The notes below the pieces were generated by a model. It did no database searches, was not told the DNA's origin, and saw only the letters and a list, made by a program, of their open reading frames with translations. From sequence record LR756504.1: 64,000 nt of DNA; one strand, 5' to 3'. Positions within the stretch are counted from its first letter, which is position 1. The number at the start of each line of letters is the position of its first letter. Made by a program: the position numbers and the translations under genes. Below, one piece after another: positions 221 to 63,977 of this stretch.

Positions 221-457
221 ATGAAATATAGTGTGGATGATATTCTAATTTGTAAGAAAGTAGGTTTAGATATACTATTAGGAAAGAAGTTTTCTATAGT
301 AGATATATCTGTTGACAATTTTAATATTTGTATTTGTTCTATACAATCTGAAGATTCAATAGAATATCCTATAATGTATTTCCCTGAAACATTAGATGAA
401 TATTTCTATAATTTACAAGAACATAGAAAAGCTATCATAGACAACCTCCTTTCTTAA
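221..457 (+). CDS. C-terminal-tag family small protein
   Basis: Ends QEHRKAIIDNLLS*. Confidence 0.8.
   Translation: MKYSVDDILICKKVGLDILLGKKFSIVDISVDNFNICICSIQSEDSIEYPIMYFPETLDEYFYNLQEHRKAIIDNLLS
444..454 (+). repeat. Anti-Shine-Dalgarno-identical 11-mer ACCTCCTTTCT, copy 1
   Basis: Exact match, also at 985, 3300 and 5616. Confidence 0.85.
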
Positions 458-469
458 AATTAAACTATA

Positions 470-715
470 ATGAAAATGAAATATATTAAAGTCGGTGATT
501 ATTTATTTTGTATTAAAAGATATAAGTTTGATAATGATACGATTGATTTTTACGTTGGTGAAAAGTGTAAAGTTATAACTAAATGGATTAGTGGAATAAC
601 TATTGGTAAAGCTAAAGATTACGCTTACGGTATTCCTTTTTCTTTAGTAGGAGTTCACCTTTATTTTGAAACAGTTGAGGAACATAGAAAAAAATTAATA
701 GCAAGTATTCTATGA
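470..715 (+). CDS. C-terminal-tag family small protein (LxC..G.K subfamily)
   Basis: VGDYLFCIK start; ends EEHRKKLIASIL*. Confidence 0.8.
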   Translation: MKMKYIKVGDYLFCIKRYKFDNDTIDFYVGEKCKVITKWISGITIGKAKDYAYGIPFSLVGVHLYFETVEEHRKKLIASIL

Positions 716-975
716 TAGAAATGATTAGTGAATCTGACCAAGAGTATACAAATGGTTATCGAATATCTGCTTGGATAGAATATCCTGTTAGAAGTTATCT
801 ATGTGGTGCAATAAGAATAGAATACTTTTATAACAATGTGAAAAGACATGAATGTATTTTTCCACCTATAGAAGGATATTATTTACCGTATACTGAATTA
901 TTAAAGTTGGCAAAAGATAATGCTCCTAAAAGCGTGAGTGAATTACGAAAGGAGATAATAGAAGACTTATTATAA
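712..975 (+). CDS. C-terminal-tag protein, paralog of 23090
   Basis: YRISAWIEYP..EYFYN shared with 23090; ends SELRKEIIEDLL*. Confidence 0.8.
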   Translation: MIEMISESDQEYTNGYRISAWIEYPVRSYLCGAIRIEYFYNNVKRHECIFPPIEGYYLPYTELLKLAKDNAPKSVSELRKEIIEDLL

Positions 976-984
976 ATTCTCTAT

Positions 985-995
985 ACCTCCTTTCT
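985..995 (+). repeat. Anti-SD 11-mer, copy 2
   Basis: ACCTCCTTTCT, intergenic. Confidence 0.85.
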
Positions 996-1011
996 TTATA
1001 GATATAAGTTT

Positions 1012-1257
1012 ATGAATGATTTTAAAACAGGTGATAAATTATACAGTAATAAACACAATATGTGGTTTACTATAATTTATATTTTTGAAGATATAACAAC
1101 ATCAACGAATTTACATATAAGAAGTGATGAAAAAGTAAAGGGTATTCATATTCATATAGGTAAAGGAATAAGATATAGTGATATTGGTGTAGAGTATTTA
1201 ACAAAAGTTCAATATAAAGCAAAAAGAAGGAATTCTATAATACGCGATTTATTATAA
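1012..1257 (+). CDS. C-terminal-tag protein (GDKLYS pair)
   Basis: Ends KRRNSIIRDLL*; paralog of 1259. Confidence 0.8.
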   Translation: MNDFKTGDKLYSNKHNMWFTIIYIFEDITTSTNLHIRSDEKVKGIHIHIGKGIRYSDIGVEYLTKVQYKAKRRNSIIRDLL

Positions 1258-1258
1258 T

Positions 1259-1564
1259 ATGGATAAAGAACTTTTCAATTTAAAACCAGGTGATAAGTTG
1301 TATAGTCATAAGTATGAAATATGGCTTACAATATTTTCTGTATCTACGTGTATTGGATATATTCAAAATAATATATTTACTATGGAGCTTGTTACAAAAA
1401 GTGTTCCTGATAGTGAGTTATATTTTAGTGCAAATTGTAGAGAACGTCTTAATTTAACACTTGCACATATAGGAATTAATGATATAGGATTGGATAAGAA
1501 ATTCTTAACTGAGGTACAATATAAATTTAAAAAGAGGAATGCTATAATAAATGATTTACTATAA
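1259..1564 (+). CDS. C-terminal-tag protein (GDKLYS pair)
   Basis: Ends KKRNAIINDLL*. Confidence 0.8.
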   Translation: MDKELFNLKPGDKLYSHKYEIWLTIFSVSTCIGYIQNNIFTMELVTKSVPDSELYFSANCRERLNLTLAHIGINDIGLDKKFLTEVQYKFKKRNAIINDLL

Positions 1565-1827
1565 TGGAAATAGGAGATATATTAATAGTTAAAAATAAAA
1601 TAATTAAAGACGGTAATCTTTATGCTATACCTAAGTATACTAAGGTTATTATTTGGAGTAAATGTAATATGAATAAATTTTATAAAAATAACTCACATAT
1701 AGCCTATGGAATTAAAACTAAAGATACTGCAAGGATACTTACAGATGATGAAATAGCACTTAATTTTTGGACATTAGCTGAATATAGAAAAATTAAAATA
1801 GAAGACTTGATTACAGAATGTATTTAA
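1564..1827 (+). CDS. C-terminal-tag protein (FWTxAEYRK subfamily)
   Basis: IGDILIVK start; ends FWTLAEYRKIKIEDLITECI*. Confidence 0.8.
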   Translation: MEIGDILIVKNKIIKDGNLYAIPKYTKVIIWSKCNMNKFYKNNSHIAYGIKTKDTARILTDDEIALNFWTLAEYRKIKIEDLITECI

Positions 1828-2143
1828 ATACGTGATTCTCAATTTCTCTATTTTTTAGCATTTTTGTATAGTCTTTAATATCCACTGAGATTTTTTTTAA
1901 TCTATAAGTATCTTCATGCATACTTTTAGGATCCTTCAATTCTTCAATGAATCTTTCTATCATATTATCGAAAGAATTGAATCTCCTTTCGCAATAAAAT
2001 TCAAGTTCTTTAATATAGGCTTTTTTATCTTCTTTAATAGAATCATCATCATTGCGTAGTATTACCCAACGAACATTTTTTATAATGTCATCTTCGGTTT
2101 CTATTTTATCAAGTTCGGCTTTTGATTTGAATAGTTCATTCAT
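1811..2143 (-). CDS. Hypothetical protein
   Basis: 110 aa, ATG start, downstream of 2154 in the same operon. Confidence 0.7.
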   Translation of the reverse strand: MNELFKSKAELDKIETEDDIIKNVRWVILRNDDDSIKEDKKAYIKELEFYCERRFNSFDNMIERFIEELKDPKSMHEDTYRLKKISVDIKDYTKMLKNREIENHVFKYIL

Positions 2144-2498: not shown

Positions 2499-2729
2499 AT
2501 GGATGAAGGTGATATATTAATAGTTAAAACTGATATGTTTTTAGGTATACCTAAACATAGTAAAGTTATTATACATAATCGTCATACAACTATAATTAGT
2601 AGCTATAGAATTAATAGTTATATACTTAAATATGGTGATGATTATTCAAGGGTAATTAGTGATAGCGAATTATGTAATTTTTGGACTGCTATAGAATACA
2701 GAAAATTTAAAATAGAAGAACTATTATGA
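2499..2729 (+). CDS. C-terminal-tag protein (FWTxAEYRK subfamily)
   Basis: Ends FWTAIEYRKFKIEELL*. Confidence 0.8.
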   Translation: MDEGDILIVKTDMFLGIPKHSKVIIHNRHTTIISSYRINSYILKYGDDYSRVISDSELCNFWTAIEYRKFKIEELL

Positions 2730-2941
2730 TAGAAGGTGATATACTAATACTTAAATGTGATATGTTTTTAGATATACCTAAGTATACTAAGGTTACTATT
2801 TATAGATGTTTAACAACAATTAATCGTTGTATAATTGATATTGATAATGGTGCTATGAAAGCTATGATACAAGAAAAAGAATTAAGTTATTTCTGGAAAT
2901 TAGCAGAGTATAGACAACATAAAATAAAAGATTTAATATAA
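2726..2941 (+). CDS. C-terminal-tag protein (FWTxAEYRK subfamily)
   Basis: Ends FWKLAEYRQHKIKDLI*. Confidence 0.8.
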   Translation: MIEGDILILKCDMFLDIPKYTKVTIYRCLTTINRCIIDIDNGAMKAMIQEKELSYFWKLAEYRQHKIKDLI

Positions 2942-3300
2942 TGACTAGTATAGAGCTTATAGAGAAAATGAAAGGATTTAAATATTTAGAAGAAATATTA
3001 AATCAAGAAATAGAAAAAATGAATCGTTTTTTTGCATATGTTATATTAGATAATCAATGGAATCAAATAGAGTTTAGTCATTATAATGTTGATGATAGAA
3101 ATTGTAATAATTATTTAAGTATATACCTAAATTGTTTAATACAAAATGACTGTATGAATGATGACGAATTACCACATATGATTATATTATTAGATTATAC
3201 TAACGAAGAATCTTTTAACGAAAAATATCATATCATGTTAATGAATAAGGAGTCTATAATAAAGGCTTATAAGAGGAAGTATATTATAGAGAATGTTTAA
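2941..3300 (+). CDS. C-terminal-tag protein
   Basis: Ends AYKRKYIIENV*. Confidence 0.75.
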   Translation: MTSIELIEKMKGFKYLEEILNQEIEKMNRFFAYVILDNQWNQIEFSHYNVDDRNCNNYLSIYLNCLIQNDCMNDDELPHMIILLDYTNEESFNEKYHIMLMNKESIIKAYKRKYIIENV

Positions 3301-3310: not shown

Positions 3311-3312
3311 AT

Positions 3313-3648
3313 ATGGAAATAAATTTACACATCTCTTACAATTTGGGTATAAACTATAACTATAAAAGAAGTGATACTATAGTAAAAGTTATTGACTATC
3401 CTTTGAATAAGGGTTTAAATGATAAAGGATATTATATAGATGTTTATAGCTATAATGTATGTAGAGAAACAATTATGGACATATTGAAGCTTGATAATAT
3501 AAAATATACTACAATTAGAATTATGGCTAATAAGCTTCTAATAAACAATAAATCAACATCAATATTAAAGTATGTAACTGTTTATATTAGTAATATTGAT
3601 TATTACAGAACTTGGAATAGAAAAACTATAATAGAAGAACTAATATGA
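3313..3648 (+). CDS. C-terminal-tag protein
   Basis: Ends TWNRKTIIEELI*. Confidence 0.8.
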   Translation: MEINLHISYNLGINYNYKRSDTIVKVIDYPLNKGLNDKGYYIDVYSYNVCRETIMDILKLDNIKYTTIRIMANKLLINNKSTSILKYVTVYISNIDYYRTWNRKTIIEELI

Positions 3649-3878
3649 ATGTTGGAGATATACTAATAGCTAAAGATAATGAATTATTTATAAAAGGGTT
3701 ATCGAAATATGATAAACTTATCATATTAGATAAGTATTCTACATTTTCATTATATAGACTTGATAGCATTAATATGGATGTAAGTATTTTTTCTATGATA
3801 TTTACTAAAAGTGAATTAGAATTTCATTTTTGGACATTAGCAGAATATAGAAAACTTATTATAGAAGACTTAATATGA
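3645..3878 (+). CDS. C-terminal-tag protein (FWTxAEYRK subfamily)
   Basis: Ends FWTLAEYRKLIIEDLI*. Confidence 0.8.
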   Translation: MNVGDILIAKDNELFIKGLSKYDKLIILDKYSTFSLYRLDSINMDVSIFSMIFTKSELEFHFWTLAEYRKLIIEDLI

Positions 3879-4093
3879 AATATGGTGATGTATTAATAGC
3901 TAAAGATACAGAATTACCTGGTATATCTAAATATGATAAAGTTGTTATTACTTATATGTATTCTGATAATACTAATTTTTATTATAAAATTGAATGTGAC
4001 GTGGATACTATGATACTTCATGAGAAAGATATACCATATTATTTTTGGACATTATCAGAGTATCGAAAACTTATCATAAAAGATTTAATATAG
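3875..4093 (+). CDS. C-terminal-tag protein (FWTxAEYRK subfamily)
   Basis: Ends FWTLSEYRKLIIKDLI*. Confidence 0.8.
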   Translation: MKYGDVLIAKDTELPGISKYDKVVITYMYSDNTNFYYKIECDVDTMILHEKDIPYYFWTLSEYRKLIIKDLI

Positions 4094-4100: not shown

Positions 4101-4328
4101 ATGTACAAGAAAGGAGATGTTCTATTATATAAATTGGATAGTAGAGGAATTAAGAAAGGTGAGAGATTCTATATAAAAGATGTCACTATAAGTAGTGGAG
4201 GAGGAGTATATTACCATGTTTCTGATAAAGGTAGTTATACGTATACATTTACCGATGAAAATATTCATGATAAATTTATTACATTAGAGGAGCATAGAAA
4301 ACTTATTATTAAAGAGATAATAGATTAG
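4101..4328 (+). CDS. C-terminal-tag protein
   Basis: KKGDVLL start; ends LEEHRKLIIKEIID*. Confidence 0.8.
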   Translation: MYKKGDVLLYKLDSRGIKKGERFYIKDVTISSGGGVYYHVSDKGSYTYTFTDENIHDKFITLEEHRKLIIKEIID

Positions 4329-5074: not shown

Positions 5075-5305
5075 ATGTTTAAAAAAGTATTCTATTTTAA
5101 GGATAATATTAAATCAGAAGTTAACTGTGAATCTATTTTTCATAGTATAATAATAAAATATTTTAATAAGGATATTGAGTTTTATGAAACATCTATAGAT
5201 AGTTATCCTTTTGTATATACTGATGCTGGATTATTTGATTTGGCTTATAATAATATTCCAAGAGTTCACATAAAAAGAAAGAAAATAATAGAAGACTTGT
5301 TATGA
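5075..5305 (+). CDS. C-terminal-tag protein
   Basis: Ends IKRKKIIEDLL*. Confidence 0.75.
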   Translation: MFKKVFYFKDNIKSEVNCESIFHSIIIKYFNKDIEFYETSIDSYPFVYTDAGLFDLAYNNIPRVHIKRKKIIEDLL

Positions 5306-5571
5306 TAGAGAGAAGATTTAATTCAGGTTTTAAACCAGGTGATAGAGTTAAAGTAAACTATAAGATGGTTAGTAAAGGACAATTACTAACTGTTAGAGAT
5401 AAAATTTTAACAGTGAAAGAGGTTAAGCATCACATTAGTCATTATTGGATAGTTTACTTTGTAGAGGAAAATAAATTTTATGAATTGGATAAAGGGTTAT
5501 TAAATATTCTATTAATTAAAGTAGATATTAGAGATGATAGAAGATTAAGAATTAGTTCATTGAAATTATAG
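5302..5571 (+). CDS. KOW/SH3-like C-terminal-tag protein
   Basis: FKPGDRVKV; ends DDRRLRISSLKL*. Confidence 0.75.
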   Translation: MIERRFNSGFKPGDRVKVNYKMVSKGQLLTVRDKILTVKEVKHHISHYWIVYFVEENKFYELDKGLLNILLIKVDIRDDRRLRISSLKL

Positions 5572-5826: not shown

Positions 5827-6132
5827 TTAAATATTTAGATTGTTTATTTTAGATAATCTATTATTTAGAGTATTGTTTATTTGGAATATATCTTCAGAGT
5901 ATTTACAAATTGACCAACCATAACCATTTGTATCTTGTATAGCGAAATGTGGTGTATAACCTTCTTTGTGAATATACTCTATATTTTTTATAGTTAGAGT
6001 ATACGGATATTTGACTTTATTCATACCGTATATACCACCAGCACAATTTGACCAACTATATGGATATTTTAGTATAGTTACTCTATCACCTGCTTTTAAA
6101 TCTGCAAATTTTAAATAACTCATATTAGTCAA
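5827..6132 (-). CDS. YPYT/DTNGYGW family tagged protein
   Basis: GDRVTILKYPYSWS..KYPYTLTI..HFAIQDTNGYGWSI; ends NNRLSKINNLNI*. Confidence 0.85.
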   Translation of the reverse strand: MTNMSYLKFADLKAGDRVTILKYPYSWSNCAGGIYGMNKVKYPYTLTIKNIEYIHKEGYTPHFAIQDTNGYGWSICKYSEDIFQINNTLNNRLSKINNLNI

Positions 6133-6708: not shown

Positions 6709-7002
6709 TTATATGTTTAAGTTCTCTATTCTATTTTTTCTATTAATTAAAATATTGTTTCTTTGAAATAAAAATACAGTTTCACTATTAATAGCCCAAC
6801 CAAAACCATTAGTATCTTTTATAGCAATATGTGGCATCCAAGCATATCTATTATACGTTATATTATCTATCGTTAGTAGATATGGATATTTAACTTTATA
6901 TCGTTTATCTATACCACCAGCTGCACTAGACCAACTATTTGGATAATTTAAGATAGTTACACTATCCCCAACTTTTAAGTCTTTAAAATGTAAATAGTTC
7001 AT
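6709..7002 (-). CDS. YPYT/DTNGYGW family tagged protein
   Basis: Ends INRKNRIENLNI*. Confidence 0.85.
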   Translation of the reverse strand: MNYLHFKDLKVGDSVTILNYPNSWSSAAGGIDKRYKVKYPYLLTIDNITYNRYAWMPHIAIKDTNGFGWAINSETVFLFQRNNILINRKNRIENLNI

Positions 7003-7286
7003 TCTTCAATATTTAAGTTGTCTATTCTATTTTTTCTATCGTTTAGAACATCGTTCTTTTCAAATAGATGATATGTTCTTCTATTAATTGACCAACAATA
7101 ACCATCTGTGTCATCTATGGATATAGCTAAATGTGTACCACCACATCCTATATCACATATTTTATTTATAATAAAGGTGTATGGATATTTTAACTTTCCA
7201 TTATTAAACCAATCCCATAAAGGAGGTTCACATAGAATAGTTACTCTATCGCCTACTTTTAAATCGGTGCAATTTAAATCTATCAT
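6999..7286 (-). CDS. YPYT/DTNGYGW family tagged protein
   Basis: Ends NDRKNRIDNLNIEE*. Confidence 0.85.
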   Translation of the reverse strand: MIDLNCTDLKVGDRVTILCEPPLWDWFNNGKLKYPYTFIINKICDIGCGGTHLAISIDDTDGYCWSINRRTYHLFEKNDVLNDRKNRIDNLNIEE

Positions 7287-7537
7287 TTATTTGAATTCTT
7301 TTGAATAATTCTTTCTAACTTTTTAAAATTTTTTACAATAGTTCTTTCTACTTGAGATAATGCGGTATCAATTTTAGAATCATCCATGTTATCTACAACT
7401 TGATGGTAGGTAAGTTCATCTATATTATCAGAAGGCTTTTTATACATTCGTTTAAATAGATTTATTTGTGGTTCTGTACATTGGAATAGTAATCTCTTTA
7501 GAGTATCCTTTCCAAATTTAGCTAATGTTTGATTCAT
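7283..7537 (-). CDS. Hypothetical protein
   Basis: 84 aa, overlaps both neighbours in the operon. Confidence 0.7.
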   Translation of the reverse strand: MNQTLAKFGKDTLKRLLFQCTEPQINLFKRMYKKPSDNIDELTYHQVVDNMDDSKIDTALSQVERTIVKNFKKLERIIQKNSNK

Positions 7538-7799
7538 TTAAGTTGTTTATTCTATTTTTTCTATCATTTAAAACATTATTTTTTCCAACTAGATTGTAAT
7601 TAATTTCATCAATTAACCAACTACGATTATCATTATCTTTAACAAGTATTCTCGTTTCATTAAAAGTATTTACACGTAATATATATTCTATAATAAATGT
7701 ATAAGGATAAACTAATACATTTCCATAGAAAGTAGGTTTGTTTGGGATAGTTACTCTATCACCAATTTTTAAATCATTAATAAAGTTTGAATATGTCAT
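7518..7799 (-). CDS. YPYT family tagged protein (divergent)
   Basis: GDRVTIP..YPYTFII; ends NDRKNRINNLNESNIS*. Confidence 0.8.
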   Translation of the reverse strand: MTYSNFINDLKIGDRVTIPNKPTFYGNVLVYPYTFIIEYILRVNTFNETRILVKDNDNRSWLIDEINYNLVGKNNVLNDRKNRINNLNESNIS

Positions 7800-7800
7800 A

Positions 7801-8280
7801 TTAAAATAGTCTAACTTCGTCTATTGGAACTTTATAGAAATCTTTTAGAATACCTTTTACAATTAAATCAAATTTTCTATTACCACCATAAAGTTCTATA
7901 TCAGTTTTTTGATTTAAAGACGTAGTATCAATACCCATTCTTCTTGGATGTAAATAGAATTTCTTTTCTTGTATAAGATATTCCATAACGATAACACCAT
8001 TCTTTCTATATTCTTTTACAATATAAGGCTCTTCACCTTCATCAGTTATTTCTTCATCTCTTTCTGTAATAACTAAGTCTTTGATTAATTTAATGAAATA
8101 ATTTTTGAAGGATTCTTTCTCATTATCTTCAACAACAACTTCTTCTGTTTTAGGCACATCTTTAGAATTGATGTTTTGTAATTCAGATATAACTTGTTTT
8201 ATTGCAAGTTTAGCAGTTTCTAAATCACCATCTTCAATTCTTTTAATAGATATATTTAATATTTTAGTTAGATGTTTCAT
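7801..8280 (-). CDS. Hypothetical protein
   Basis: 159 aa, in operon. Confidence 0.7.
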   Translation of the reverse strand: MKHLTKILNISIKRIEDGDLETAKLAIKQVISELQNINSKDVPKTEEVVVEDNEKESFKNYFIKLIKDLVITERDEEITDEGEEPYIVKEYRKNGVIVMEYLIQEKKFYLHPRRMGIDTTSLNQKTDIELYGGNRKFDLIVKGILKDFYKVPIDEVRLF

Positions 8281-8575
8281 TGTTTATATTATTTATTTTA
8301 TTTTTTCTATTTTCAATAATAGAATTTCTTGTGAAGATTTCTGCATTATCATTAATTATTGCCCAACCAAAACCATTAGTATCTTGTATAGCTAAATGAG
8401 GTAAGTATTGCTTATTTCTATTTTGGTGAGATACACTTTTTATAGTTAATGTATATGGGTATTCAACTTTATCAACACCATATGTTCCACCATCAAGATG
8501 TGAATATACGTATGGTTCTTTTAGTATAGTTACTCTATCACCTGGTTTTAAGTCTATAAAACTTAAATAGCTCAT
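8264..8575 (-). CDS. YPYT/DTNGYGW family tagged protein
   Basis: Ends ENRKNKINNINNETSN*. Confidence 0.85.
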   Translation of the reverse strand: MSYLSFIDLKPGDRVTILKEPYVYSHLDGGTYGVDKVEYPYTLTIKSVSHQNRNKQYLPHLAIQDTNGFGWAIINDNAEIFTRNSIIENRKNKINNINNETSN

Positions 8576-19682: not shown

Positions 19683-19711
19683 AAAACTTTTGGTAATAGA
19701 GAATCTATAAT
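19683..19711 (+). promoter_or_regulatory. Class II promoter AAAACT-N17-TATAAT
   Basis: At the head of the 19.7-29.8 kb plus-strand tagged block. Confidence 0.6.
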
Positions 19712-19716
19712 TGGAT

Positions 19717-19974
19717 ATGGCTAATAAAAAATTTGAAATAGTAGGAGGTAATTTGGAAATATCTGATGATATTATATATGATAATGGATTTAGTATAGGT
19801 ATATCATATACTAAATCTCAATTTAATATGATGGAAGATAAGTATAAAGGTGGTGTAATTTCATTAGAACAAGCTAAAGAGTTAGCCGACCATATTTATG
19901 AAAAGTTATCTAAAACTGATAAATATAAAGGTGAAATAAGAAAATATAAGATTGAATCTTTAAACAAAGAATAA
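19717..19974 (+). CDS. C-terminal-tag protein
   Basis: Ends GEIRKYKIESLNKE*. Confidence 0.7.
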   Translation: MANKKFEIVGGNLEISDDIIYDNGFSIGISYTKSQFNMMEDKYKGGVISLEQAKELADHIYEKLSKTDKYKGEIRKYKIESLNKE

Positions 19975-39506: not shown

Positions 39507-39566
39507 AATGTTCTACTTTTAGATTTAATCCATATTATATAACAAATGTATTTCCATAATTATTTT

Positions 39567-39595
39567 AAAACTTTCGTCTTTAGTTTTACTATAAT
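39567..39595 (+). promoter_or_regulatory. Class II promoter AAAACT-N17-TATAAT
   Basis: Upstream of tagged gene 39624. Confidence 0.6.
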
Positions 39596-39623
39596 TAGTA
39601 TATGGGTAAAATTGCGAATTAAT

Positions 39624-44432: not shown

Positions 44433-44701
44433 AATAACTCATTTATAATAGCTTCTCTATGTTCTGTAATAGTCAAGTAATTACTTAATAGTCGTTCCAC
44501 ATCTTCGTTATATAAAGAATTAAAAAGATGTATTCCATCACCAACTAGTATGTGAATACTATAGTCATAAATGTTATATTTAATCGGAATTTTAATACCT
44601 CTATATTTACAATATACGAATTTATCTTTTATAAACTTTTCGAATATTGAATAATTTATAGCACGTTGTTTAGTATTAATACTATCTATCATACCGCTCA
44701 T
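44429..44701 (-). CDS. Tagged protein (trio)
   Basis: Ends ITEHREAIINELL*. Confidence 0.8.
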   Translation of the reverse strand: MSGMIDSINTKQRAINYSIFEKFIKDKFVYCKYRGIKIPIKYNIYDYSIHILVGDGIHLFNSLYNEDVERLLSNYLTITEHREAIINELL

Positions 44702-45047: not shown

Positions 45048-45257
45048 TTAATCTAAATTCAATTTATTTATTCTATATCGTCTATAATCACTTACCTTAA
45101 TAAACAAATGACATTTCTGTATACCACCATATCCACTCGCACCACCATCAAAAGTCATATACCATGTATTATTTATTTCACCACACGCTCTAACAGTATA
45201 TACAACTTCAGAATTCTTTATGGATACTACTCTATCCCCTATATTAAATGGTTTCAT
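45048..45257 (-). CDS. KOW-like tagged protein
   Basis: PFNIGDRVV; ends SDYRRYRINKLNLD*. Confidence 0.8.
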   Translation of the reverse strand: MKPFNIGDRVVSIKNSEVVYTVRACGEINNTWYMTFDGGASGYGGIQKCHLFIKVSDYRRYRINKLNLD

Positions 45258-45259: not shown

Positions 45260-45937
45260 TTAATCTTGAATAAATTCTGCTATTGTATGTTGTCTACACC
45301 ATTGTTTATAATTTTGTATACCTAATTTATCAGCTATTAAATTAATAACATATTTCTCAATATCTTTATAGTTTTTATGTGCGCTTAATGATGCATAAAT
45401 TATAGAAAGAGTATATGCATTAATATATTCTTTTGATGATACATCAACATTTGGAATATATTTAACTATAAAGTCTACATTTACTTCTCTTTTACCATCT
45501 GTCATATAATCAAGTAAAAATAGAGAATATTGATATTCTTTAGTTGATGCTATAACATCATATTTTTTATTGAAATTAGTTTCATCCCATGGTGTTCCAC
45601 GCTCAATCATATGTAATCTCTCACATTCATAAGTATGATCCCAAGAAGCACCATATACACTTATAAGTTTTACTGTAGGTGTAATTGTTGTAAATAATAT
45701 ATTAACTTTATTATGTGTAAAATAATCAGATAATTTATCTACAATAAGTGTACCTATTATTATTTTTTCAAATTCAGAAAAAGTGGAAATGATTTGATTA
45801 TATTTTTGTATTTCAGAGTCTTCTATAGATAAAATTATTGGTGGTGTATCAATTACATCATCATTTTCATAGTTCTTCACTACTTTTCTCATCCAATTAA
45901 GTACTTCTTCAAATTGTGTATGTAATTTTAATTTCAT
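45260..45937 (-). CDS. Tandem paralog with variant tag
   Basis: STKEYQYSLFLLDY shared with 45948; ends WCRQHTIAEFIQD*. Confidence 0.8.
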   Translation of the reverse strand: MKLKLHTQFEEVLNWMRKVVKNYENDDVIDTPPIILSIEDSEIQKYNQIISTFSEFEKIIIGTLIVDKLSDYFTHNKVNILFTTITPTVKLISVYGASWDHTYECERLHMIERGTPWDETNFNKKYDVIASTKEYQYSLFLLDYMTDGKREVNVDFIVKYIPNVDVSSKEYINAYTLSIIYASLSAHKNYKDIEKYVINLIADKLGIQNYKQWCRQHTIAEFIQD

Positions 45938-45947: not shown

Positions 45948-46619
45948 TTAATCTTCTATAATATCTGCTAAAATAACTCGTCTACACCATTTTTTATAGC
46001 TATATACTTCTAATCTTTCAGCTATTAAATCTAACATATATTGGGATGCTTTATTCTTATCAATAGATATAGTATTGTAAATAACAGAAATTGCAAATAA
46101 GTTAACTATTTCATTTGCTGGTACGTCTAAATTAGATACATTAATTTCTCTATTACCATCAGTTATGTAGTCTAATAGAAATAATGAATATTGATATTCT
46201 TTAGTTGATGAAACTCTATTATATGTTTCTTCGAATGTTTCTTTTACCCATACATTTTTTTCTTCATTAAAGATTGCCTTTTCCCATGGTGTATGAGCAT
46301 CTAATTTCTTTTTTTCGTATGTATCTGACCACGTATCACCATACGAAATATCTGATAGTAATTTGAGTACACTTATAACACTTTTTAATATGATTTCTAT
46401 TTTATCATCATTTATATAATAATGTGAAGAATCTATTATATGTGAAGCGATTAATATTTTCTCATATTCAGAGAAATTACTTATGTTATTTGCATATTTT
46501 TGTATTATGACATCATCTACACAAAGAAGAAATGTTAAATCTGTTTCTGAATTCAGAAATATATTATTCCTTACCCAATTAAATGTTTCTTCAAATAGTG
46601 GATTTACGTTAAATTTCAT
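45948..46619 (-). CDS. Tandem paralog with variant tag
   Basis: Ends WCRRVILADIIED*. Confidence 0.8.
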   Translation of the reverse strand: MKFNVNPLFEETFNWVRNNIFLNSETDLTFLLCVDDVIIQKYANNISNFSEYEKILIASHIIDSSHYYINDDKIEIILKSVISVLKLLSDISYGDTWSDTYEKKKLDAHTPWEKAIFNEEKNVWVKETFEETYNRVSSTKEYQYSLFLLDYITDGNREINVSNLDVPANEIVNLFAISVIYNTISIDKNKASQYMLDLIAERLEVYSYKKWCRRVILADIIED

Positions 46620-48203: not shown

Positions 48204-49002
48204 TTACAAATTATAAAGATTTGGATACTTATCTTTCATTTTTTTAGTCCATTCTAATGCTTCTCTTCTTCTCCGCGTTAAATCTATTTTAGAATACCTT
48301 CTAACAACTGTCAGATTAGTTTTAATTAATACCTTATATGGTACATCACAGTTGGATATAATCCAATGGTAAATGGTTTCATATTTCTTAGGGATAAAGA
48401 ATGAACATACATCTTCATAATTTCGAGAAATATGTATTCCCGTAATTTCTTCAATTTCATCCAAAGCACAATCGTTCGCATCTGTCAAGTAAGTACGATA
48501 CCATTCATCTCTTAACTTACCAGTGATTTGCTCTATCACTAACCATTTGAATTCTATGAAAGCTTTTACTCTATCATAACAATGTTTATTATAAGCTTCA
48601 ATATTTCCCAATTTAAGTTTTTCATCACCACCACATTTCACTTTGATGATGAAATAATCACTACATTTTATCATAAAACAATGTTATTGTATATTTGTTT
48701 TTCTATAGAAATAATTTTTTCGTTTTTCTGTATGTTTAGTAGATATCTTACATTTCTTCATCACGATCACGTTGAGCATCCAATTTAACTTCTTCTTTAA
48801 TAGATTCAATGGCTTCATCCAAAGGTATTACCTTATAATTATTGGATAACATCCACCCGTAGGCGGTTTTCATTTTTTCATTACTTTTAATACATTCAGA
48901 TTCAGCAAGAGTTTTATCAGTGAATATTTCAGAAATATCATAATCACCTTGTCTGAACACTACAAATACTTCTGTATAAGCCGAAAATAATTTCTTTCCC
49001 AT
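48204..49002 (-). other. Two hypothetical CDS (48204-48674, 48748-49002)
   Basis: Operon behind the 49827 promoter. Confidence 0.65.
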
Positions 49003-49220
49003 TATTGTAATGTGTTTATTTTAGATTTTCTATTATTCAATCTACGTAAAAGTTCACTGGATAGGATATCTATCCATTTATCTTTTCCTCCTAAATAATC
49101 AATTGGTATTCTTACGTTCCCAATACCATTAAAACAATCAATAACAGAATTGATGTGTTCATTACTCATTTGAGATACAGGTATATGATTATCGTTTGCA
49201 GTAATCCAAATTGCTCCCAT
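49002..49220 (-). CDS. C-terminal-tag protein
   Basis: Ends NNRKSKINTLQ*. Confidence 0.75.
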   Translation of the reverse strand: MGAIWITANDNHIPVSQMSNEHINSVIDCFNGIGNVRIPIDYLGGKDKWIDILSSELLRRLNNRKSKINTLQ

Positions 49221-51556: not shown

Positions 51557-52495
51557 TTTTATAAATTTTATTCCAATCAGATACTACAGCATTCCAATCG
51601 GATATTAATGCATCTTTATCAGACTTAAAAATATCACTGCTATTTATATCCATATCTTCATATGTATTATAATTACCCACTATATTAAATATAGAACCCA
51701 TTCCCTTAAAGAAATTGGATATAAAGCTTTTAAATTTCATATTAATATTTTTATTCAAATAATTCACAATCATTTTTATTTATTTTAAAAAAGCTACTCT
51801 TAATTTCCACACTTTAACTTTAAAACTGTTTCTTGAAATGTCTTGAATAATTCAGGCTCATCATCAAAATATTTTAAATAGGTATCTTCCAACTCCATAT
51901 CATCGAGAGCCTTCATAATATAATCACCAACATCATCAGAAAGTAAATCATATATTTTATCTATGATCTCATCAAAGTTACTATCTGTAACATCTTTATA
52001 TTCTCTACCTGTAGAAAAATAACTACCTATCTCTATCTTATTTCTTCCTGAATAATATAAATTATACACAGATTCAGCAGAATAAATTGTTTTCATAGGT
52101 ACATGATATAATGTTATCATACCATTAATACTTCTAACACTTAAAATGGCATCTCTTAATTTGTCTTTTGTTATATTCATATCTTATTTGAAACCTGTTC
52201 TTTTTAGATTCATTATTTGTTTATCACTTATATCAAAAAAAGTTATTTTTAATTTTATTCCAAATCGTTTTATAATATGTCTAATATAGGGTTCTAAGAA
52301 ACTATTTTCTTTATTTTTAATTATAATATAAAGTATATAAACTTTTTCACCTCTTATAAAATCATATGAAAAAACATCATATCCTTTATCAATAATCTCT
52401 ATCCCATCAATAGAAAATTTAGATATTAGACTTTTTGATGTCTTTTCTGCCTTATTGGTTTTTTGAAGTAAAGATACTCTATAATATTTATACAT
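51540..52495 (-). other. Three hypothetical CDS (51540-51773, 51800-52180, 52184-52495)
   Basis: Packed minus-strand ORFs. Confidence 0.65.
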
Positions 52496-52686
52496 TATAA
52501 ATTCAATTTTTCGATTCTTTCTTTTCTTGTTTCTATTTTGGTATCATCAAATTCTAACATACCCAATTGTAAATATTCTTTAATTTCTTTTATACTAATC
52601 ATATGCATTGGAAATGATTCTATTTCACTAGTTATAGCATTTATTGTATAAATTCTACCATCATTACGTAAATAATATTTTTTCAT
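52495..52686 (-). CDS. C-terminal-tag protein
   Basis: Ends ETRKERIEKLNL*. Confidence 0.75.
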   Translation of the reverse strand: MKKYYLRNDGRIYTINAITSEIESFPMHMISIKEIKEYLQLGMLEFDDTKIETRKERIEKLNL

Positions 52687-54816: not shown

Positions 54817-55101
54817 TTATAAATTATTTAAATTGTCTATTTTAGACTTTCTTTCAGATAAAATATCAACTTTATCAAAAAGTCTTGGGTTTATTCCACT
54901 TATTTCACTATGATCAATATCTTCGAATCTTAAAAAACTAACACCAAAACTATAAGGTGTTATTGATTTTATAATGAGAACTTTATCACGTAATGTATCA
55001 GCTATGCGTTTAGATGATTCTCGACTTATATCACCAATTCTACTTTCAATTAATATTACTTTATCACCAATATTAAACTTACACTGATTGTACATCATCA
55101 T
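54817..55101 (-). CDS. KOW-like tagged protein
   Basis: FNIGDKVIL; ends SERKSKIDNLNNL*. Confidence 0.8.
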   Translation of the reverse strand: MMMYNQCKFNIGDKVILIESRIGDISRESSKRIADTLRDKVLIIKSITPYSFGVSFLRFEDIDHSEISGINPRLFDKVDILSERKSKIDNLNNL

Positions 55102-55601: not shown

Positions 55602-55994
55602 TTAGTATAATTTTTCTATTCGAGATTTTCTATCTAACACTTCAACTGATAATAAATAAGAAAAAGTAATAAGTGATGGTTTACCATCACTTATATCAGG
55701 TGAAGTGAATTTGAAATATGATCTATTCGTAAGCTCTTCTATATATCCATTATATTCATTAATTACTGTTGAATTTCTTCTGTTTTGTGTTTTTATTTTA
55801 ATTAATGTATTAGACGTAATATTTCTTAATAAGGTATAAGCTTCTATTCGAAATGCAACATCTTCTTTATAAAGTTTATTATTCTCGGCTATTAATTCTA
55901 AATTTTCTGTTTGACCATCCAAATATTCAGCGTATAGCATCATAGTTATACACTCTTTTCTGATTCTTATATTTTTGTTTAATTCAACTTTCAT
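55602..55994 (-). CDS. C-terminal-tag protein
   Basis: Ends LDRKSRIEKLY*. Confidence 0.8.
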   Translation of the reverse strand: MKVELNKNIRIRKECITMMLYAEYLDGQTENLELIAENNKLYKEDVAFRIEAYTLLRNITSNTLIKIKTQNRRNSTVINEYNGYIEELTNRSYFKFTSPDISDGKPSLITFSYLLSVEVLDRKSRIEKLY

Positions 55995-58020: not shown

Positions 58021-58540
58021 TTATTTAGCTATTTCCCAATCATTTTTTTCATCATCCCAATGACGATTGTCATATGTATAGAATATAAAAGACTGTCCCA
58101 ATATAGTCAAATCAAAATTAAATCCTGCATGATCACTTCTTCTTGTCCAACATAAATCAAATGAAAATATATTCCCCAATAAATTTAAATGTATTCCAAA
58201 CCATTTATTATCAGTCAATAAACGAACATTTAAATCAAACATTTGGTATACATTCAATTTATTCGGAAGCCATTGTAAACAGAATGATTTATTCTTACAC
58301 CACTTAATAGGTTTCTCTATAAAATACATATTATAATATTTTTAATTCATCAACTTCGAATATATCACTACCTATAAAATTTCCCTTTATAGTAACCATT
58401 TTTCCTTCTAATTTATGTAATGGTTCGTCGTTCTTTCTCAATTTCATTTTCAACCAACCCAATACTATGAAAGCTTCTTCCTGTTCATTTTTAGAACCTT
58501 TGTCGAATATATCAACGACTACTTTTCCACTAATTTCCAT
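58021..58540 (-). other. Two hypothetical CDS (58021-58329, 58331-58540)
   Basis: Packed ORFs. Confidence 0.65.
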
Positions 58541-59006
58541 ATATTTTATCTATTCTTGATTTTCTATCTTGTTTAATTTCTTTTTCTCTTATTGGCATGT
58601 GCCAATCTAATTTTCTATCATTATCAAGAAATATAGTAATATAATACTTTAATTCATTATGGAATTCTATTTCTCTTATTACTGCTTTCACGTCTATTGA
58701 ATTATTTATTTTTGTTGTTATCACATCACCAACTTTAAACTTAGAGTTATCAATTATATATTGATTTCTCTGATTTTTTTCTATTTGTTTTAATTTTTTG
58801 CTATACGGAATATCTAATAATACTAATGGTCCAGTAAGAATAAATATTAAATTCCACCCTCCTACAATATTAGTTTTATTTAAATATTTAGAAAAATATG
58901 TTTTGTGTTCTTTTATTTCAATAATACTTTTCATACCAATAATTATCCACAAACAAAAACCCGTTGTAGAAATAATTATCAATAAAGCTTCCATTGTAGC
59001 ATCCAT
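58530..59006 (-). CDS. Two TMs plus a KOW-like domain plus C-terminal tag
   Basis: KFKVGDVITT; ends QDRKSRIDKIYGN*. Confidence 0.8.
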   Translation of the reverse strand: MDATMEALLIIISTTGFCLWIIIGMKSIIEIKEHKTYFSKYLNKTNIVGGWNLIFILTGPLVLLDIPYSKKLKQIEKNQRNQYIIDNSKFKVGDVITTKINNSIDVKAVIREIEFHNELKYYITIFLDNDRKLDWHMPIREKEIKQDRKSRIDKIYGN

Positions 59007-62141: not shown

Positions 62142-62148
62142 ACCTATA

Positions 62149-62433
62149 ATGGAATACAACGATTTTAAAAAATTAAATGTAGGTGATAATATCACAATTA
62201 AAGAAAATCCAATTTCTTGGACATCCCACAATTATGGTAGATGTGGAACTGATAGAGTAAAGTATCCGTATACATTTACCATCGTTAAATTTGCATATTT
62301 GAAAGGATTTTTTAATCATATTTCTATTATATGTCAAAACGGTTATGGTTGGTCAATTGAAGTGTCTAATTATGAAAAATTTGAAATTAATAAAAAAAGC
62401 AGAAGAAGTAGAATCGAAAATTTGAATATATGA
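62149..62433 (+). CDS. YPYT/NGYGW family tagged protein
   Basis: Ends KSRRSRIENLNI*. Confidence 0.85.
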   Translation: MEYNDFKKLNVGDNITIKENPISWTSHNYGRCGTDRVKYPYTFTIVKFAYLKGFFNHISIICQNGYGWSIEVSNYEKFEINKKSRRSRIENLNI

Positions 62434-62672
62434 AAATTGAAATTGGTGATGTAATGATTTGTTTACCAGGATTTACTAATAACATTAGTAACTCTAACTA
62501 TGGTGGTGCTGGGTATACAGAAAATAAAATATTTACCGTAGGGAGCATTACAGGTAACGGTAGAGTTATATGGGCTAATGATGAAAGTGGTAAAGGTGTT
62601 TACAGTTATACATTAAAACATTATACTAATAGAAAATCAAGAATTGAAAAATTACACAATGAAAATTTATAA
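62430..62672 (+). CDS. KOW-like tagged protein
   Basis: IGDVMIC; ends TNRKSRIEKLHNENL*. Confidence 0.8.
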   Translation: MKIEIGDVMICLPGFTNNISNSNYGGAGYTENKIFTVGSITGNGRVIWANDESGKGVYSYTLKHYTNRKSRIEKLHNENL

Positions 62673-62692
62673 TAATAAATAAAATACCATTT

Positions 62693-63121
62693 TTATATTA
62701 TATGATATTCTAAATAATTATGTTTCTCTATATACTCTTGTGGTGATTTATATTTTTCGGGGAAACCTTTCGACCTATCCCAACTTGGTTTTAGCATATC
62801 TATTGCATACATAGCCCTAGCAATTGTTGGCTCATATGTAGAACCTAAACCAAAACCAGTTCCCCATTTAGATGATGGTTTATGTACAGATGCGAATCTG
62901 AACTCACCATAACGATCATAATCAACTTTACCAATTTTATTATCCTTAGTAAATAAAAACCATGTCGATGGTTCTTCTGGTACTATAATATCAAATCCAT
63001 TTGATTTTAGCAGTTTTGCATATTGATTTAATGCTTCGGATGTAGAGTAAATTTCATCTTCCTCTTCTTCTTCCTCATCCCAATCTTCCGAGAAATCTTC
63101 AAACAATTTTAAGTATTTCAT
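62693..63121 (-). CDS. MKYLKLFE N-terminal-tag protein with acidic linker
   Basis: MKYLKLFEDFSEDWDEEEEEE, near-identical to the 47163 N-terminus. Confidence 0.8.
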   Translation of the reverse strand: MKYLKLFEDFSEDWDEEEEEEDEIYSTSEALNQYAKLLKSNGFDIIVPEEPSTWFLFTKDNKIGKVDYDRYGEFRFASVHKPSSKWGTGFGLGSTYEPTIARAMYAIDMLKPSWDRSKGFPEKYKSPQEYIEKHNYLEYHII

Positions 63122-63124
63122 GAA

Positions 63125-63141
63125 CTATATATAATATATAC
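63125..63141. promoter_or_regulatory. TATATA-rich bidirectional element between divergent genes
   Basis: CTATATATAATATATAC in a 23-nt gap between two ATGs. Confidence 0.45.
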
Positions 63142-63144
63142 TTT

Positions 63145-63699
63145 ATGAATTTCTACTCAAATTTCGATGATTTTCTATTAGAGAAAAATGGATTTACACA
63201 CAATGTATTATTATATAAATTAAATATTCCTGGATGGGAAAATATTATAAACAGTATTGATAAAGAAGATATTTGGAAAATAGAGAATACAGAATTACCT
63301 GGTATACCAGGTGGTTATCAATTGTATCCACATGTTACTTTATTGTATAATTTAAGAAATACAAATATAAACAAAATTGGTTCATTAATAAGCACCTTAG
63401 AACCTATTAAATTTGAAATTAATGGTATAAATATATTTAGAACATCTAAGGGATACGATGTATTAAAAATGTCTGTTAAACCAACCGAAGAACTTCTTTA
63501 TATACATCAAATATTTAAGGATATTTTTCATACAAATTCTAATGATGATTATACACCACATATTACAATAGCATACTTAAAAGAAGGTACTGCTCTAAAA
63601 TATGTTGATTATGAATATAAAAATATTATTTATTCCGATACTATCATATACAGTCTAAAAAGTGGTTATCAACTCGAATTTAAAATTGATGCTAAATAA
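63145..63699 (+). CDS. 2H phosphoesterase, Acb1 (T4 gp57B)-like
   Basis: Two HxT motifs, YPHVTLLY and DDYTPHITIAY; the second closely resembles DDYTPHITLSY of T4 Acb1 as recalled. Confidence 0.8.
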   Translation: MNFYSNFDDFLLEKNGFTHNVLLYKLNIPGWENIINSIDKEDIWKIENTELPGIPGGYQLYPHVTLLYNLRNTNINKIGSLISTLEPIKFEINGINIFRTSKGYDVLKMSVKPTEELLYIHQIFKDIFHTNSNDDYTPHITIAYLKEGTALKYVDYEYKNIIYSDTIIYSLKSGYQLEFKIDAK

Positions 63700-63704
63700 G
63701 TAGC

Positions 63705-63977
63705 TTAATTATAAAGATTATCAATTCTCGATTTTCTATCAAGTTTTACACATCTTTCATCAAATTCTATACGCTCTAATCCTTCCAATAAATAAACAAT
63801 ACTAAAATTTTTAACTTTAATTTTAACTATTTTACCTTTTATATTATGATTGTATAATATGGCTATTACTCTATCATCAATTTTAAATTTGACGTTTCTC
63901 AGTAATCGTTTCTTGTGCTTTATGTTTATTATTGATGTAATTAAAATATCTATTGAAATTAATGGACCACTCAACAT
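63705..63977 (-). CDS. KOW-like tagged protein
   Basis: KFKIDDRVIA; ends LDRKSRIDNLYN*. Confidence 0.8.
   Translation of the reverse strand: MLSGPLISIDILITSIINIKHKKRLLRNVKFKIDDRVIAILYNHNIKGKIVKIKVKNFSIVYLLEGLERIEFDERCVKLDRKSRIDNLYN

Follow-up and report, generated by a model that had tools for sequence, protein, structure and literature searches.

Why would one of the largest known phage genomes end about one in seven of its small, mostly unrelated-looking proteins with the same short motif, and does this tail look like a common label read by one partner? We examined bases 1-64000 of LR756504.1 (the window), which belong to a 636-kb uncultivated phage of the Mahaphage clade. The initial annotation described about 60 ORFs in at least six blocks on both strands with an Arg...Ile...Leu motif within roughly 15 residues of the stop. 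This observation is confirmed, and the set is larger than first described. With the pattern R-[KRQENLI]-x-x-I-x-x-[LIVF], 66 matches fall in a greedy set of 184 window ORFs, and 55 of these end within 7 residues of the stop. Within-protein shuffles give a mean of 0.97 near the stop (maximum 5 in 500 shuffles) and 9.9 elsewhere. A count matrix built from the genome-wide set (19 bits) finds 56 window ORFs at >=12 bits. As a composition control, 100 kb of Lak-B1, also 26% GC, gives 0 C-terminal hits, against 49 in the first 50 kb of the window.

Genome-wide, about 137 of 958 ORFs carry the motif at the C terminus, against 13 internal hits in 172,683 positions. The number of residues after the Leu position is 0 (9 ORFs), 1 (57), 2 (31), 3 (19), 4 (10), and 5-8 (11), so the tail lies within 0-8 residues of the stop, tighter than first proposed. 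The tagged genes concentrate at record positions 580-636 kb and 0-80 kb. The genome is reported as circular (PMC7162821), so this is one accessory arm of ~140 kb. In the window they lie in at least ten blocks on both strands: 221-1827(+), 2499-5571(+), 5827-8575(-), 19711-28353(+), 39546(+), 43490-45937(-), 49002(-), 52495(-), 54817-55994(-), 58530(-), 62149-62672(+), and 63705(-).

We describe the window ORFs in order, with tails scored in bits by the count matrix and bodies assigned to numbered sequence families (F1 to F10) or left as singletons. The first plus-strand block contains 221..457 (78 aa, singleton, tail EHRKAIIDNLLS, 25 bits, with 2 residues after the Leu position), 470..715 (81 aa, singleton, EHRKKLIASIL, 20 bits), 712..975 (87 aa, F5 by BLAST, ELRKEIIEDLL, 26 bits), 1012..1257 (81 aa, F6, KRRNSIIRDLL, 20 bits), 1259..1564 (101 aa, F6, KKRNAIINDLL, 20 bits), and 1564..1827 (87 aa, F2, EYRKIKIEDLITECI, 28 bits). 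The second, also on the plus strand, contains 2499..2729 (76 aa, F2, EYRKFKIEELL, 27 bits), 2726..2941 (71 aa, F2, EYRQHKIKDLI, 25 bits), 2941..3300 (119 aa, singleton, YKRKYIIENV, 19 bits), 3313..3648 (111 aa, singleton, WNRKTIIEELI, 24 bits), 3645..3878 (77 aa, F2, EYRKLIIEDLI, 28 bits), 3875..4093 (72 aa, F2, EYRKLIIKDLI, 26 bits), 4101..4328 (75 aa, singleton, EHRKLIIKEIID, 22 bits), 5075..5305 (76 aa, singleton, IKRKKIIEDLL, 22 bits), and 5302..5571 (89 aa, DDRRLRISSLKL, 13 bits), which hhalign links to F4 at 88%.

The tagged ORFs of the minus-strand block that follows are F1 proteins, which we aligned: 5827..6132 (101 aa, NNRLSKINNLNI, 18 bits), 6709..7002 (97 aa, INRKNRIENLNI, 24 bits), 6999..7286 (95 aa, NDRKNRIDNLNIEE, 24 bits), 7518..7799 (93 aa, NDRKNRINNLNESNIS, 23 bits), and 8264..8575 (103 aa, ENRKNKINNINNETSN, 22 bits).

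The longest block, on the plus strand, begins with 19711..19974 (87 aa, singleton, EIRKYKIESLNKE, 23 bits), whose orthologue in the relative keeps the tail. Then come the F3 proteins (also aligned) 20537..20806 (89 aa, EYRKFKIENL, 26 bits), 20973..21230 (85 aa, EHRKFKIENL, 26 bits), 21754..22038 (94 aa, EHRKTIINELL, 27 bits), 22035..22304 (89 aa, EYRKYIINELL, 28 bits), 22301..22528 (75 aa, THRKNIIDSIE, 16 bits), and 22830..23093 (87 aa, EYRKSIIEELL, 29 bits). An F5 protein at 23090..23377 (95 aa, DLRKGKIDELL, 20 bits, also aligned) is followed by further F3 proteins at 23374..23676 (100 aa, EHRKSIIEKLI, 25 bits), 23673..23951 (92 aa, EYRKTIIDNIEY, 21 bits), and 24535..24789 (84 aa, EYRKTIIEKLI, 25 bits). 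The 134 aa protein at 24786..25190 is a near miss; it ends KRDLIINEIC and fails the pattern at the second position only. It is an F7 paralogue of the protein at 26941..27387 (148 aa, LKRNTIINELL, 19 bits), with which it was aligned and which has no PDB relative. The ORF at 25825..26061 (78 aa, 23 bits) has a hydrophobic, membrane-type body followed directly by the tail NNRKRKINNLISD. Aligned F4 proteins are at 26063..26275 (70 aa, NDRKDRIDNLNL, 25 bits), 26272..26487 (71 aa, NNRKSRIENLKLD, 25 bits), 26726..26944 (72 aa, DSRKDRIDKLNL, 23 bits), 27384..27605 (73 aa, NNRKHRINRLYENK, 24 bits), and 27833..28075 (80 aa, NSRKDRIESLNLD, 23 bits). Between them are 26503..26739 (78 aa, EYRKIKIEDINNDTI, 23 bits), linked to F3 by hhalign at 67-83%, and 27592..27840 (82 aa, F8, KNRIRKIKSIINE, 15 bits). 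The block ends with a second F8 protein at 28078..28353 (91 aa, KTRIRKIESLTE, 16 bits).

The remaining ORFs are more scattered. On the plus strand, 39546..39875 (109 aa, EHRESIIKDLL, 23 bits) was joined to F3 by HMM iteration. On the minus strand are 43490..43810 (106 aa, singleton, TKRKKRIDNLYK, 20 bits), three F9 proteins at 43829..44182 (117 aa, EHRLYIIDNNI, 14 bits), 44175..44432 (85 aa, EHRETIINKLCND, 20 bits), and 44429..44701 (90 aa, EHREAIINELL, 24 bits), and 45048..45257 (69 aa, DYRRYRINKLNLD, 20 bits), linked to F4 by hhalign at 93%. The F10 pair, described initially as two 225-aa proteins, consists of doubtful members. Of the two, 45260..45937(-) (225 aa, no PDB relative) has the atypical tail WCRQHTIAEFIQD at 18 bits, and its aligned paralogue 45948..46619(-) (223 aa) ends WCRRVILADIIED and fails the pattern. 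Also on the minus strand are 49002..49220 (72 aa, singleton, NNRKSKINTLQ, 16 bits), 52495..52686 (63 aa, singleton, ETRKERIEKLNL, 26 bits), 54817..55101 (94 aa, singleton, SERKSKIDNLNNL, 19 bits), 55602..55994 (130 aa, singleton, LDRKSRIEKLY, 18 bits), and 58530..59006 (158 aa, QDRKSRIDKIYGN, 19 bits), with an N-terminal membrane helix and a GD-type barrel-like part. On the plus strand are 62149..62433 (94 aa, F1, KSRRSRIENLNI, 20 bits) and 62430..62672 (80 aa, singleton, TNRKSRIEKLHNENL, 17 bits). The last ORF, 63705..64000(-) (tail LDRKSRIDNLYN, 23 bits), is cut by the window end; the full ORF is 63705-64160, 151 aa, with two predicted membrane helices.

Selection acts on the peptide. Lower synonymous than non-synonymous divergence across the tails had been set out in advance as grounds for rejecting this view, and we find the opposite. 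Among paralogues, tails have pS 0.48 and pN 0.19 and bodies have pS 0.48 and pN 0.34; among orthologues, pN/pS is 0.27 for tails and 0.51 for bodies. The synonymous codon variation noted initially is confirmed quantitatively, and tail codon use equals the genome background. All 15 orthologue pairs with the one known relative keep the tail, with tail identity of 74% against 60% for bodies, although tagged proteins evolve faster than untagged neighbors (median 62% against 75% identity).

The initial annotation called the bodies unrelated, and this holds at the sequence level. With bodies cut 10 residues before the Arg, 160 tagged proteins form 98 clusters, 81 of them singletons, and the best profile-profile link between clusters is 83% probability over 26 columns. 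Only 1 of 136 tagged proteins has a Pfam domain. Predicted membrane helices occur in 13 of 137, and hydropathy supports the two membrane proteins proposed at 25825 and 58530. Some carriers are little more than membrane helices plus the tail. In three proteins the tail follows the last membrane segment: by about 8 residues on reading the sequence of 25825-26061 (a crude hydropathy scan marks only its first segment), and by 22 and 32 residues in two ORFs outside the window. The tail has no match in Pfam, PHROGs, PDB sequences, 5.8 billion proteins, IMG/VR, metagenomes, or bacterial genomes outside this lineage. The system is seen in only one phage lineage, so comparative power is small.

The separateness of tail and body was overstated for the window, where many bodies are small SH3-like barrels that may share ancestry. 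Both families modelled here are predicted small SH3-like barrels. The AlphaFold model of the F3 protein at 22830..23093 (pLDDT 89) has six strands and a tail helix at residues 75-86, with weak SH3 fold matches. Packing of the helix on its own domain had been named as a result that would count against a docking role; in this F3 model the tail helix has pLDDT 87-92, which is compatible with such packing. In the F1 protein at 6709..7002, by contrast, the body is modelled with pLDDT ~94 but the tail with only 50-56, and the fold matches are weak small-barrel ones. Most tails are preceded by a conserved aromatic strand, so tail and last strand may be inherited together within one old superfamily. 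Tail flavor follows body family rather than neighbors, as expected from duplication rather than from a mobile tag.

The proposal of variable bodies with a constant C-terminal helix that docks on a shared partner is partly supported; the architecture of variable body plus constant C-terminal helix is supported. Our best explanation, to which we give a probability of about 0.5, is that the tail is a short, autonomously stable (pre-formed) amphipathic alpha-helix that serves as a common docking peptide on a large, fast-evolving set of small accessory proteins. It has an N-cap residue, and the invariant Arg, the Ile four residues later, and the Leu seven residues later lie on one face. At 100 degrees per residue, we calculate from the column shares that positions -4, 0, +3, +4, +7, and +8 fall within about 140 degrees, and the variable polar positions +2, +5, +6, and +9 lie opposite. 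In this view the bodies, mostly small SH3-like barrels plus membrane-anchored and other forms, are the variable parts, and the helix would bring them to one conserved partner. The motif and its position, selection on the peptide, retention in orthologues, lack of detectable similarity among most bodies, restriction to this lineage, and the helix prediction come directly from the analysis. That the conserved face contacts an external partner is our inference, as is the choice of partner, none of which was tested here. We favor the phage's own proteostasis machinery (ClpX with ClpP, or else its Hsp70), but only as a doubtful assignment. This would give the proteins a controlled lifetime, or let them hand over whatever they bind.

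The phage ClpX homologue proposed initially is real, and ClpP is present. It is encoded at 37587..38744(-) (385 aa), has Pfam AAA_2 and ClpB_D2-small matches, and aligns from residue 40 to ClpX 6sfw_O (E 7e-100). Several features weaken the proposed analogy to SspB and count against ClpX as the reader. Its N-terminal 39 residues are Lys-rich without Cys and replace the zinc-binding domain that SspB-type adaptor tails bind. The tail is a capped helix followed by 0-8 variable residues, not a fixed extreme terminus. The suggested likeness to a transposase degron was not examined, and no search returned that protein as a hit. Co-occurrence with phage clpX had been put forward as a check; Lak-B1 carries a ClpX homologue but no tags in the 100 kb sampled. 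Candidate readers do exist in the genome, which encodes this ClpX with a ClpP-docking loop that reads VGF, three Clp-protease family hits, GrpE, FKBP, and Hsp70.

The window is identical to bases 1-64000 of LR756504.1. The genome of this record, an unannotated 636,363-bp "uncultured phage", also appears as WNFQ01000001.1 and as two IMG/VR contigs of sample 3300012582. Al-Shayeb et al. list a 636-kb genome among their four largest manually curated, circular phage genomes and place all of their largest genomes in the Mahaphage clade, predicted to infect Bacteroidetes (PMC7162821). The GC content is about 25% and no tRNA is found in the window. A greedy non-overlapping set contains 184 ORFs, in which the pattern R-[KRQENLI]-x-x-I-x-x-[LIVF] matches 66 times, and 55 of these matches end within 7 residues of the stop. 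Shuffling each protein 500 times gives a mean of 0.97 matches near the stop (maximum 5) and 9.9 elsewhere. The observation of a shared C-terminal tail made in the initial annotation is real.

Genome-wide, 136 of 958 ORFs match by pattern; the remainder of the record was scanned as twelve separate pieces that were not joined, and the ORF sets are mechanical, so the fractions are approximate. A count matrix built from this set (19 bits, and thus trained on pattern-selected members) finds 137 ORFs with a C-terminal match at >=12 bits, 56 of them in the window, and only 13 internal matches in 172,683 positions. The tail ends 0-8 residues before the stop, most often 1, and only 9 of the 137 end at the Leu position. 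Tagged genes concentrate at 580-636 kb and 0-80 kb of the record (90 of the 136 pattern-defined carriers), which in a circular genome is one arm of about 140 kb. As a composition control, 100 kb of Lak-B1 (also 26% GC, same clade) contains no C-terminal match.

Column shares among the 136, counting from the Arg, are Lys 92 at +1; Lys 49, Ile 38, and Arg 38 at +3; Glu 40, Asp 25, Asn 24, and Lys 20 at +5; Asn 40, Glu 32, Asp 23, and Lys 14 at +6; Leu 97, Ile 24, Phe 11, and Val 4 at +7; Leu 45, Ile 27, Asn 19, and Tyr 11 at +8; Lys 48, Ile 21, Leu 16, and Val 14 at -4; Glu 36 at -2; and Thr 25 at -5. We infer the shape of the tail from these sequences. The residue five before the Arg is often Thr, and in type B tails Asn, Asp, or Ser precede the Arg; these are helix N-cap residues. 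Glu at -2 and Lys at +1, and Lys at +1 and Glu or Asp at +5, are spaced for intrahelical salt bridges. At 100 degrees per residue, positions -4, 0, +3, +4, +7, and +8 fall within about 140 degrees, and the variable polar positions +2, +5, +6, and +9 lie opposite. This is the signature of a short, pre-formed amphipathic helix with one conserved face and an Arg in the middle of that face.

The Ile and Leu of this face are spaced as in a short coiled coil, and it is conceivable, although improbable, that the helices bind one another or the barrels of sister proteins, making homo- or hetero-oligomers among the tagged proteins. Many co-transcribed paralogues overlap by 4 nt, and a 65-aa ORF outside the window (piece L009 of the record, 9901-10098; record 415901-416098, +) carries two tail motifs in tandem, one 16 residues before the end and one at the end. 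However, the hydrophobic face covers only about two turns and type B tails contain just two hydrophobic residues; only single chains were predicted, so self-association was not examined.

We asked whether the conservation lies in the nucleic acid, for example in a promoter, a translation-coupling element, or a recombination site in the 3' ends of genes. About half of the tagged genes in the window overlap or abut the next gene, usually by 4 nt, so the tail codons lie just upstream of the next start. However, tagged genes followed by 126-984 nt of spacer also carry the tail, substitutions are conservative at the amino acid level, and codon choice at each conserved residue matches the genome-wide usage for that amino acid (Arg is AGA in 82% of tails against 79% genome-wide, and Leu is TTA in 67% against 61%). 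Nei-Gojobori counts over seven paralogue families give pS 0.48 in tails and 0.48 in bodies, but pN 0.19 in tails against 0.34 in bodies. In 15 orthologue pairs with the one known relative, pN/pS is 0.27 in tails and 0.51 in bodies. The initial annotation had proposed in advance that synonymous divergence lower than non-synonymous divergence across tails would overturn a peptide-level reading, and this is not seen, with the one exception of a small four-member family outside the window. There is no nucleotide-level constraint and no gene conversion, but there is extra purifying selection on the peptide, and the nucleic acid explanation is contradicted. TGA stops are enriched among tagged ORFs in the window (20 of 56, against 16 of 128 others) because many overlap the next start by 4 nt, which may slightly bias the last codon but does not explain the motif.

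With the tails removed, BLAST groups the window members into 11 families and 25 singletons, HMM iteration enlarges one family to ten members, and profile-profile comparison adds only a few links. Genome-wide and including the relative, 160 tagged proteins cut 10 residues before the Arg form 98 clusters, 81 of them singletons, and the best hhalign link between multi-member clusters is 83% probability over 26 columns. Pfam gives no hit for nine representatives and PHROGs gives none for the representatives; Pfam on all 136 gives one hit, a NUDIX domain on a weak pattern match. We also tested whether the bodies arose by frameshifting of sister genes, but tblastn gave 161 in-frame hits and 0 off-frame hits, so this was rejected at BLAST sensitivity.

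Two paralogue families of tagged window proteins, F3 and F1, were modeled. F3 (87 aa, 14 sequences) is predicted at pLDDT 89, with six strands, a helix, a short strand, and the tail helix at residues 75-86, the tail having pLDDT 87-92. F1 (97 aa, 6 sequences) has a predicted barrel at pLDDT ~94, but its tail helix at residues 85-95 scores only 50-56. Foldseek searches of PDB and BFVD returned only non-significant small-barrel matches and uncharacterized phage proteins. The nearest fold matches, PetP (E 0.13), Abl SH3 (E 0.2), and YorP (E 0.43), cover the barrel only. The description of small SH3-like barrels in the initial annotation is right for these two families, but its "unrelated" should read unrelated at sequence level and often similar in fold class.

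These models raise the main rival explanation, that the helix is an integral structural element of one old, very diverged superfamily of small barrels with a C-terminal capping helix, comparable to chromo-like or Sso7d-like small SH3-type barrels in which a C-terminal helix follows the barrel. In this view the helix is the best-conserved part because it stabilizes the fold, not because it binds a shared partner, and the non-barrel carriers are secondary fusions or chance matches. In its favor, both modeled families are barrels followed by the helix, many singletons start with the same Gly-Asp strand signature, there are weak profile links among the barrel families, and tail flavor tracks family. 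An aromatic residue in a short strand 6-9 residues before the Arg is common to most window members, which fits shared ancestry of strand plus helix among the barrels. That the helix might simply pack on its own domain had been named beforehand as an outcome that would count against a docking tail; the confidently placed F3 tail and the poorly placed F1 tail point in different directions, and contacts between tail and body were not measured, so the models do not choose between the two.

Other carriers speak against a pure fold element, and not all carriers possess the barrel or are detectably related. Of the 137, 13 have predicted membrane helices, and in three of them the tail follows the last membrane segment closely, leaving no room for a barrel. 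Read directly, ORF 25825-26061 has two hydrophobic stretches and its tail starts about 8 residues after the second, although a crude hydropathy scan marks only the first stretch there; the same scan places the tail 22 and 32 residues after the last segment in two ORFs outside the window. Several 130-230-aa bodies have no similarity to the barrels, and searches of PDB sequences with the alignments of families F7 and F10 (two further families of tagged window proteins) and with a profile of the last 30 residues gave nothing below E 0.25. No non-barrel family was modeled. An invariant Arg in the middle of the conserved face across about 98 body clusters is also unusual for a purely packing helix. 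We consider the fold-element explanation unlikely, but it is the strongest of the alternatives, and if it is correct the finding shrinks to a lineage-specific expansion of small barrels. The ORF at 63705-64000 (-), which the initial annotation gave as ending at 63977, continues beyond the window; the full ORF is 63705-64160 (151 aa) and has two predicted membrane helices.

A profile of F3 against 5.8 billion proteins finds only this phage and one 43-kb Logan contig, and a profile of 53 window members again finds only these two sources. The Logan contig, the only known relative, is syntenic, with 40-90% identical proteins. All 15 tagged orthologue pairs keep the tail. Tails are 74% identical against 60% for bodies, and tagged proteins are more diverged than untagged neighbors (median 62% against 75% identity). 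DNA-pattern scans find the tail at ORF ends only in copies of this phage: two UViGs of sample 3300012582 in IMG/VR and WNFQ01000001.1 in JGI/ENA metagenomes, whereas 185,579 species-representative genomes give 27 chance loci, none at an ORF end. The profile of the last 30 residues gave 0 hits at E <= 0.001 among 1.84 billion representative proteins, but this search is uninformative because true members reach only 10-37 bits. In tblastn searches of GenBank phages, F1 and F3 hit only LR756504.1, and literature searches found no description of such a tag.

We suggest that the tail is a constant docking helix on variable accessory proteins, with a probability of about 0.5. Its position, the selection on the peptide, its retention in orthologues, its independence from the body at sequence level, and its predicted helical character come directly from the analysis, whereas contact of the conserved face with one external partner is our inference. 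The interpretation offered in the initial annotation is partly supported. We lean weakly toward the proteostasis machinery of the phage as the partner because it exists in the genome. This is a large set that includes ClpX at 37587-38744 (-), three Clp-protease family ORFs (best E 9.8e-78), Hsp70, GrpE, FKBP, a second AAA_2 ATPase, and M42 aminopeptidases; the genome also encodes IF3, NusA-like, and two sigma-70 region-2 proteins.

A more specific possibility is that the tail is a recognition signal for the phage-encoded ClpX-ClpP, either a timed degron that clears these proteins or a tether by which they deliver bound host proteins for degradation. ClpX signals and SspB-type adaptor tails are short C-terminal peptides on unrelated proteins that are read by one AAA+ machine. 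The phage ClpX is genuine (E 7e-100 to a solved ClpX, 6sfw_O), and its ClpP-docking loop, aligned to the IGF loop of that structure, reads VGF; the genome also has the three Clp-protease family hits. However, no zinc-finger Pfam hit was found, the alignment to solved ClpX starts at residue 40, and residues 1-39 are Lys-rich without Cys, in place of the zinc-binding N domain that binds SspB-type adaptor tails. The motif does not occupy the extreme C terminus with defined last residues; it is a capped helix whose conserved residues lie 8-12 residues from an end that varies in length and sequence. Co-occurrence of the tag with phage ClpX had been put forward as a check, and in Lak-B1 it fails: this phage has a ClpX homologue but 0 tags in 100 kb, including the clpX neighborhood. 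ClpX homologues also occur in phage G, Atu_ph07, and Staphylococcus phages, while F1 and F3 proteins are found in no other GenBank phage. Neither binding nor degradation was assayed, and no complex was predicted. The evidence against ClpX in particular is substantial, and we regard this specific reading as doubtful.

There is no homology to any known tag, and the closest known systems are analogies. Like poxvirus ankyrin-repeat proteins with a C-terminal PRANC (F-box-like) element, the tagged genes are many fast-evolving paralogues in arrays in an accessory genome region, with a variable N-terminal binding part joined to a constant C-terminal element that is more constrained than the body. PRANC, however, is a recognizable domain that recruits the eukaryotic SCF ligase, whereas the constant part here is a 12-15-residue helix with no Pfam match, the virus is a phage, and the partner is unknown. 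A short terminal peptide shared by otherwise unrelated proteins is also how encapsulin shells and the T4 head are loaded (T4 reviews), and the tail may be a loading peptide that docks the proteins inside the procapsid, so that they are carried in the virion and delivered with the DNA. The T4 capsid targeting sequence is N-terminal and is removed by the head protease, and encapsulin cargo is a handful of enzymes encoded next to the shell gene; about 137 different small cargo species would be unprecedented. In the stretches examined the tagged genes lie in accessory arrays and not with structural genes, although the capsid genes were not located, linkage to structural genes was not examined, and there are no virion data. 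We consider virion loading very unlikely.

Short terminal docking peptides on diverse proteins are already known. A tentative and more far-reaching reading is a phage-encoded, proteome-scale addressing system, in which about 14% of the proteins of a 636-kb phage carry one short C-terminal helix that a single dedicated reader (a phage protease complex, a chaperone, a capsid component, or an unknown hub) uses to sort, load, time, or destroy a diversified arsenal of host-directed proteins. No such system is described for any phage. Huge phages carry hundreds of small genes of unknown function with no handle for grouping them, and a shared terminal helix on about one in seven proteins would be such a handle. 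Finding its one reader would assign a common fate (timing, location, loading, or turnover) to more than a hundred orphan proteins at once, and would show that phages, like large eukaryotic viruses, can build gene families of a variable binder plus a constant dock. The tail is short, appears to fold on its own, and tolerates very different bodies, and could also be of practical interest as a portable tag once its partner is known.

Tagged genes sit in tight operon-like arrays, often overlapping the next gene by 4 nt. Neighbors in the window include a 184-aa ORF at 63145-63699 (+), flanked by tagged genes on both sides, that matches the 2'-5' RNA ligase / 2H phosphoesterase superfamily (E 1.4e-10) and the anti-CBASS Acb1 family (E 6.5e-07, just above the Pfam cut-off). 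Also present are the ClpX gene, a pyrimidine-dimer DNA glycosylase at 41808-42224 (+) (E 3.9e-15), an HD-domain protein at 14983-15570 (-) (E 5.6e-16), and a 202-aa AAA_15/AAA_21 ATPase-like ORF at 10513-11121 (-) (E 1.4e-12). At 20371-21421 (+) a small hydrophobic ORF (57 aa), a tagged F3 gene, a small hydrophobic ORF (56 aa), a tagged F3 gene, and a small hydrophobic ORF (64 aa) follow one another. This looks like a duplicated two-gene cassette of membrane peptide plus tagged barrel, and the relative keeps one such pair.

The Bacteroidetes-type -7 promoter element TAnnTTTG lies 8-70 nt upstream of 74 of 362 other operon leaders in the record, but of only 4 of 57 leaders of operons with tagged genes and of 0 of 21 tagged leaders (Fisher p = 0.016). 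Block leaders in the window lie at 221, 2499, 19711, 54817, 58530, and 62149. The statistic is weak and uncorrected, but tagged operons may use a different promoter class, and the depletion of this host-type element hints at non-early expression, which would be compatible with virion loading. We looked for a promoter specific to tagged operons, but the best k-mer (CTTGTA, 7 against 5) does not survive multiple testing and shows no common context. A near-identical intergenic stretch of about 20 nt recurs upstream of untagged genes outside the window, at record positions 228667 (-), 373196 (+), 512045 (-), and 548598 (-), and may be a phage promoter or regulatory site. A BLAST-linked cluster at record 154-601 kb (pieces L002-L012, L003) holds 26 large ORFs (355-866 aa), none of which has the tail; several start with the same N-terminal signature, and some are probably M42-type peptidase or DUF7487 relatives.
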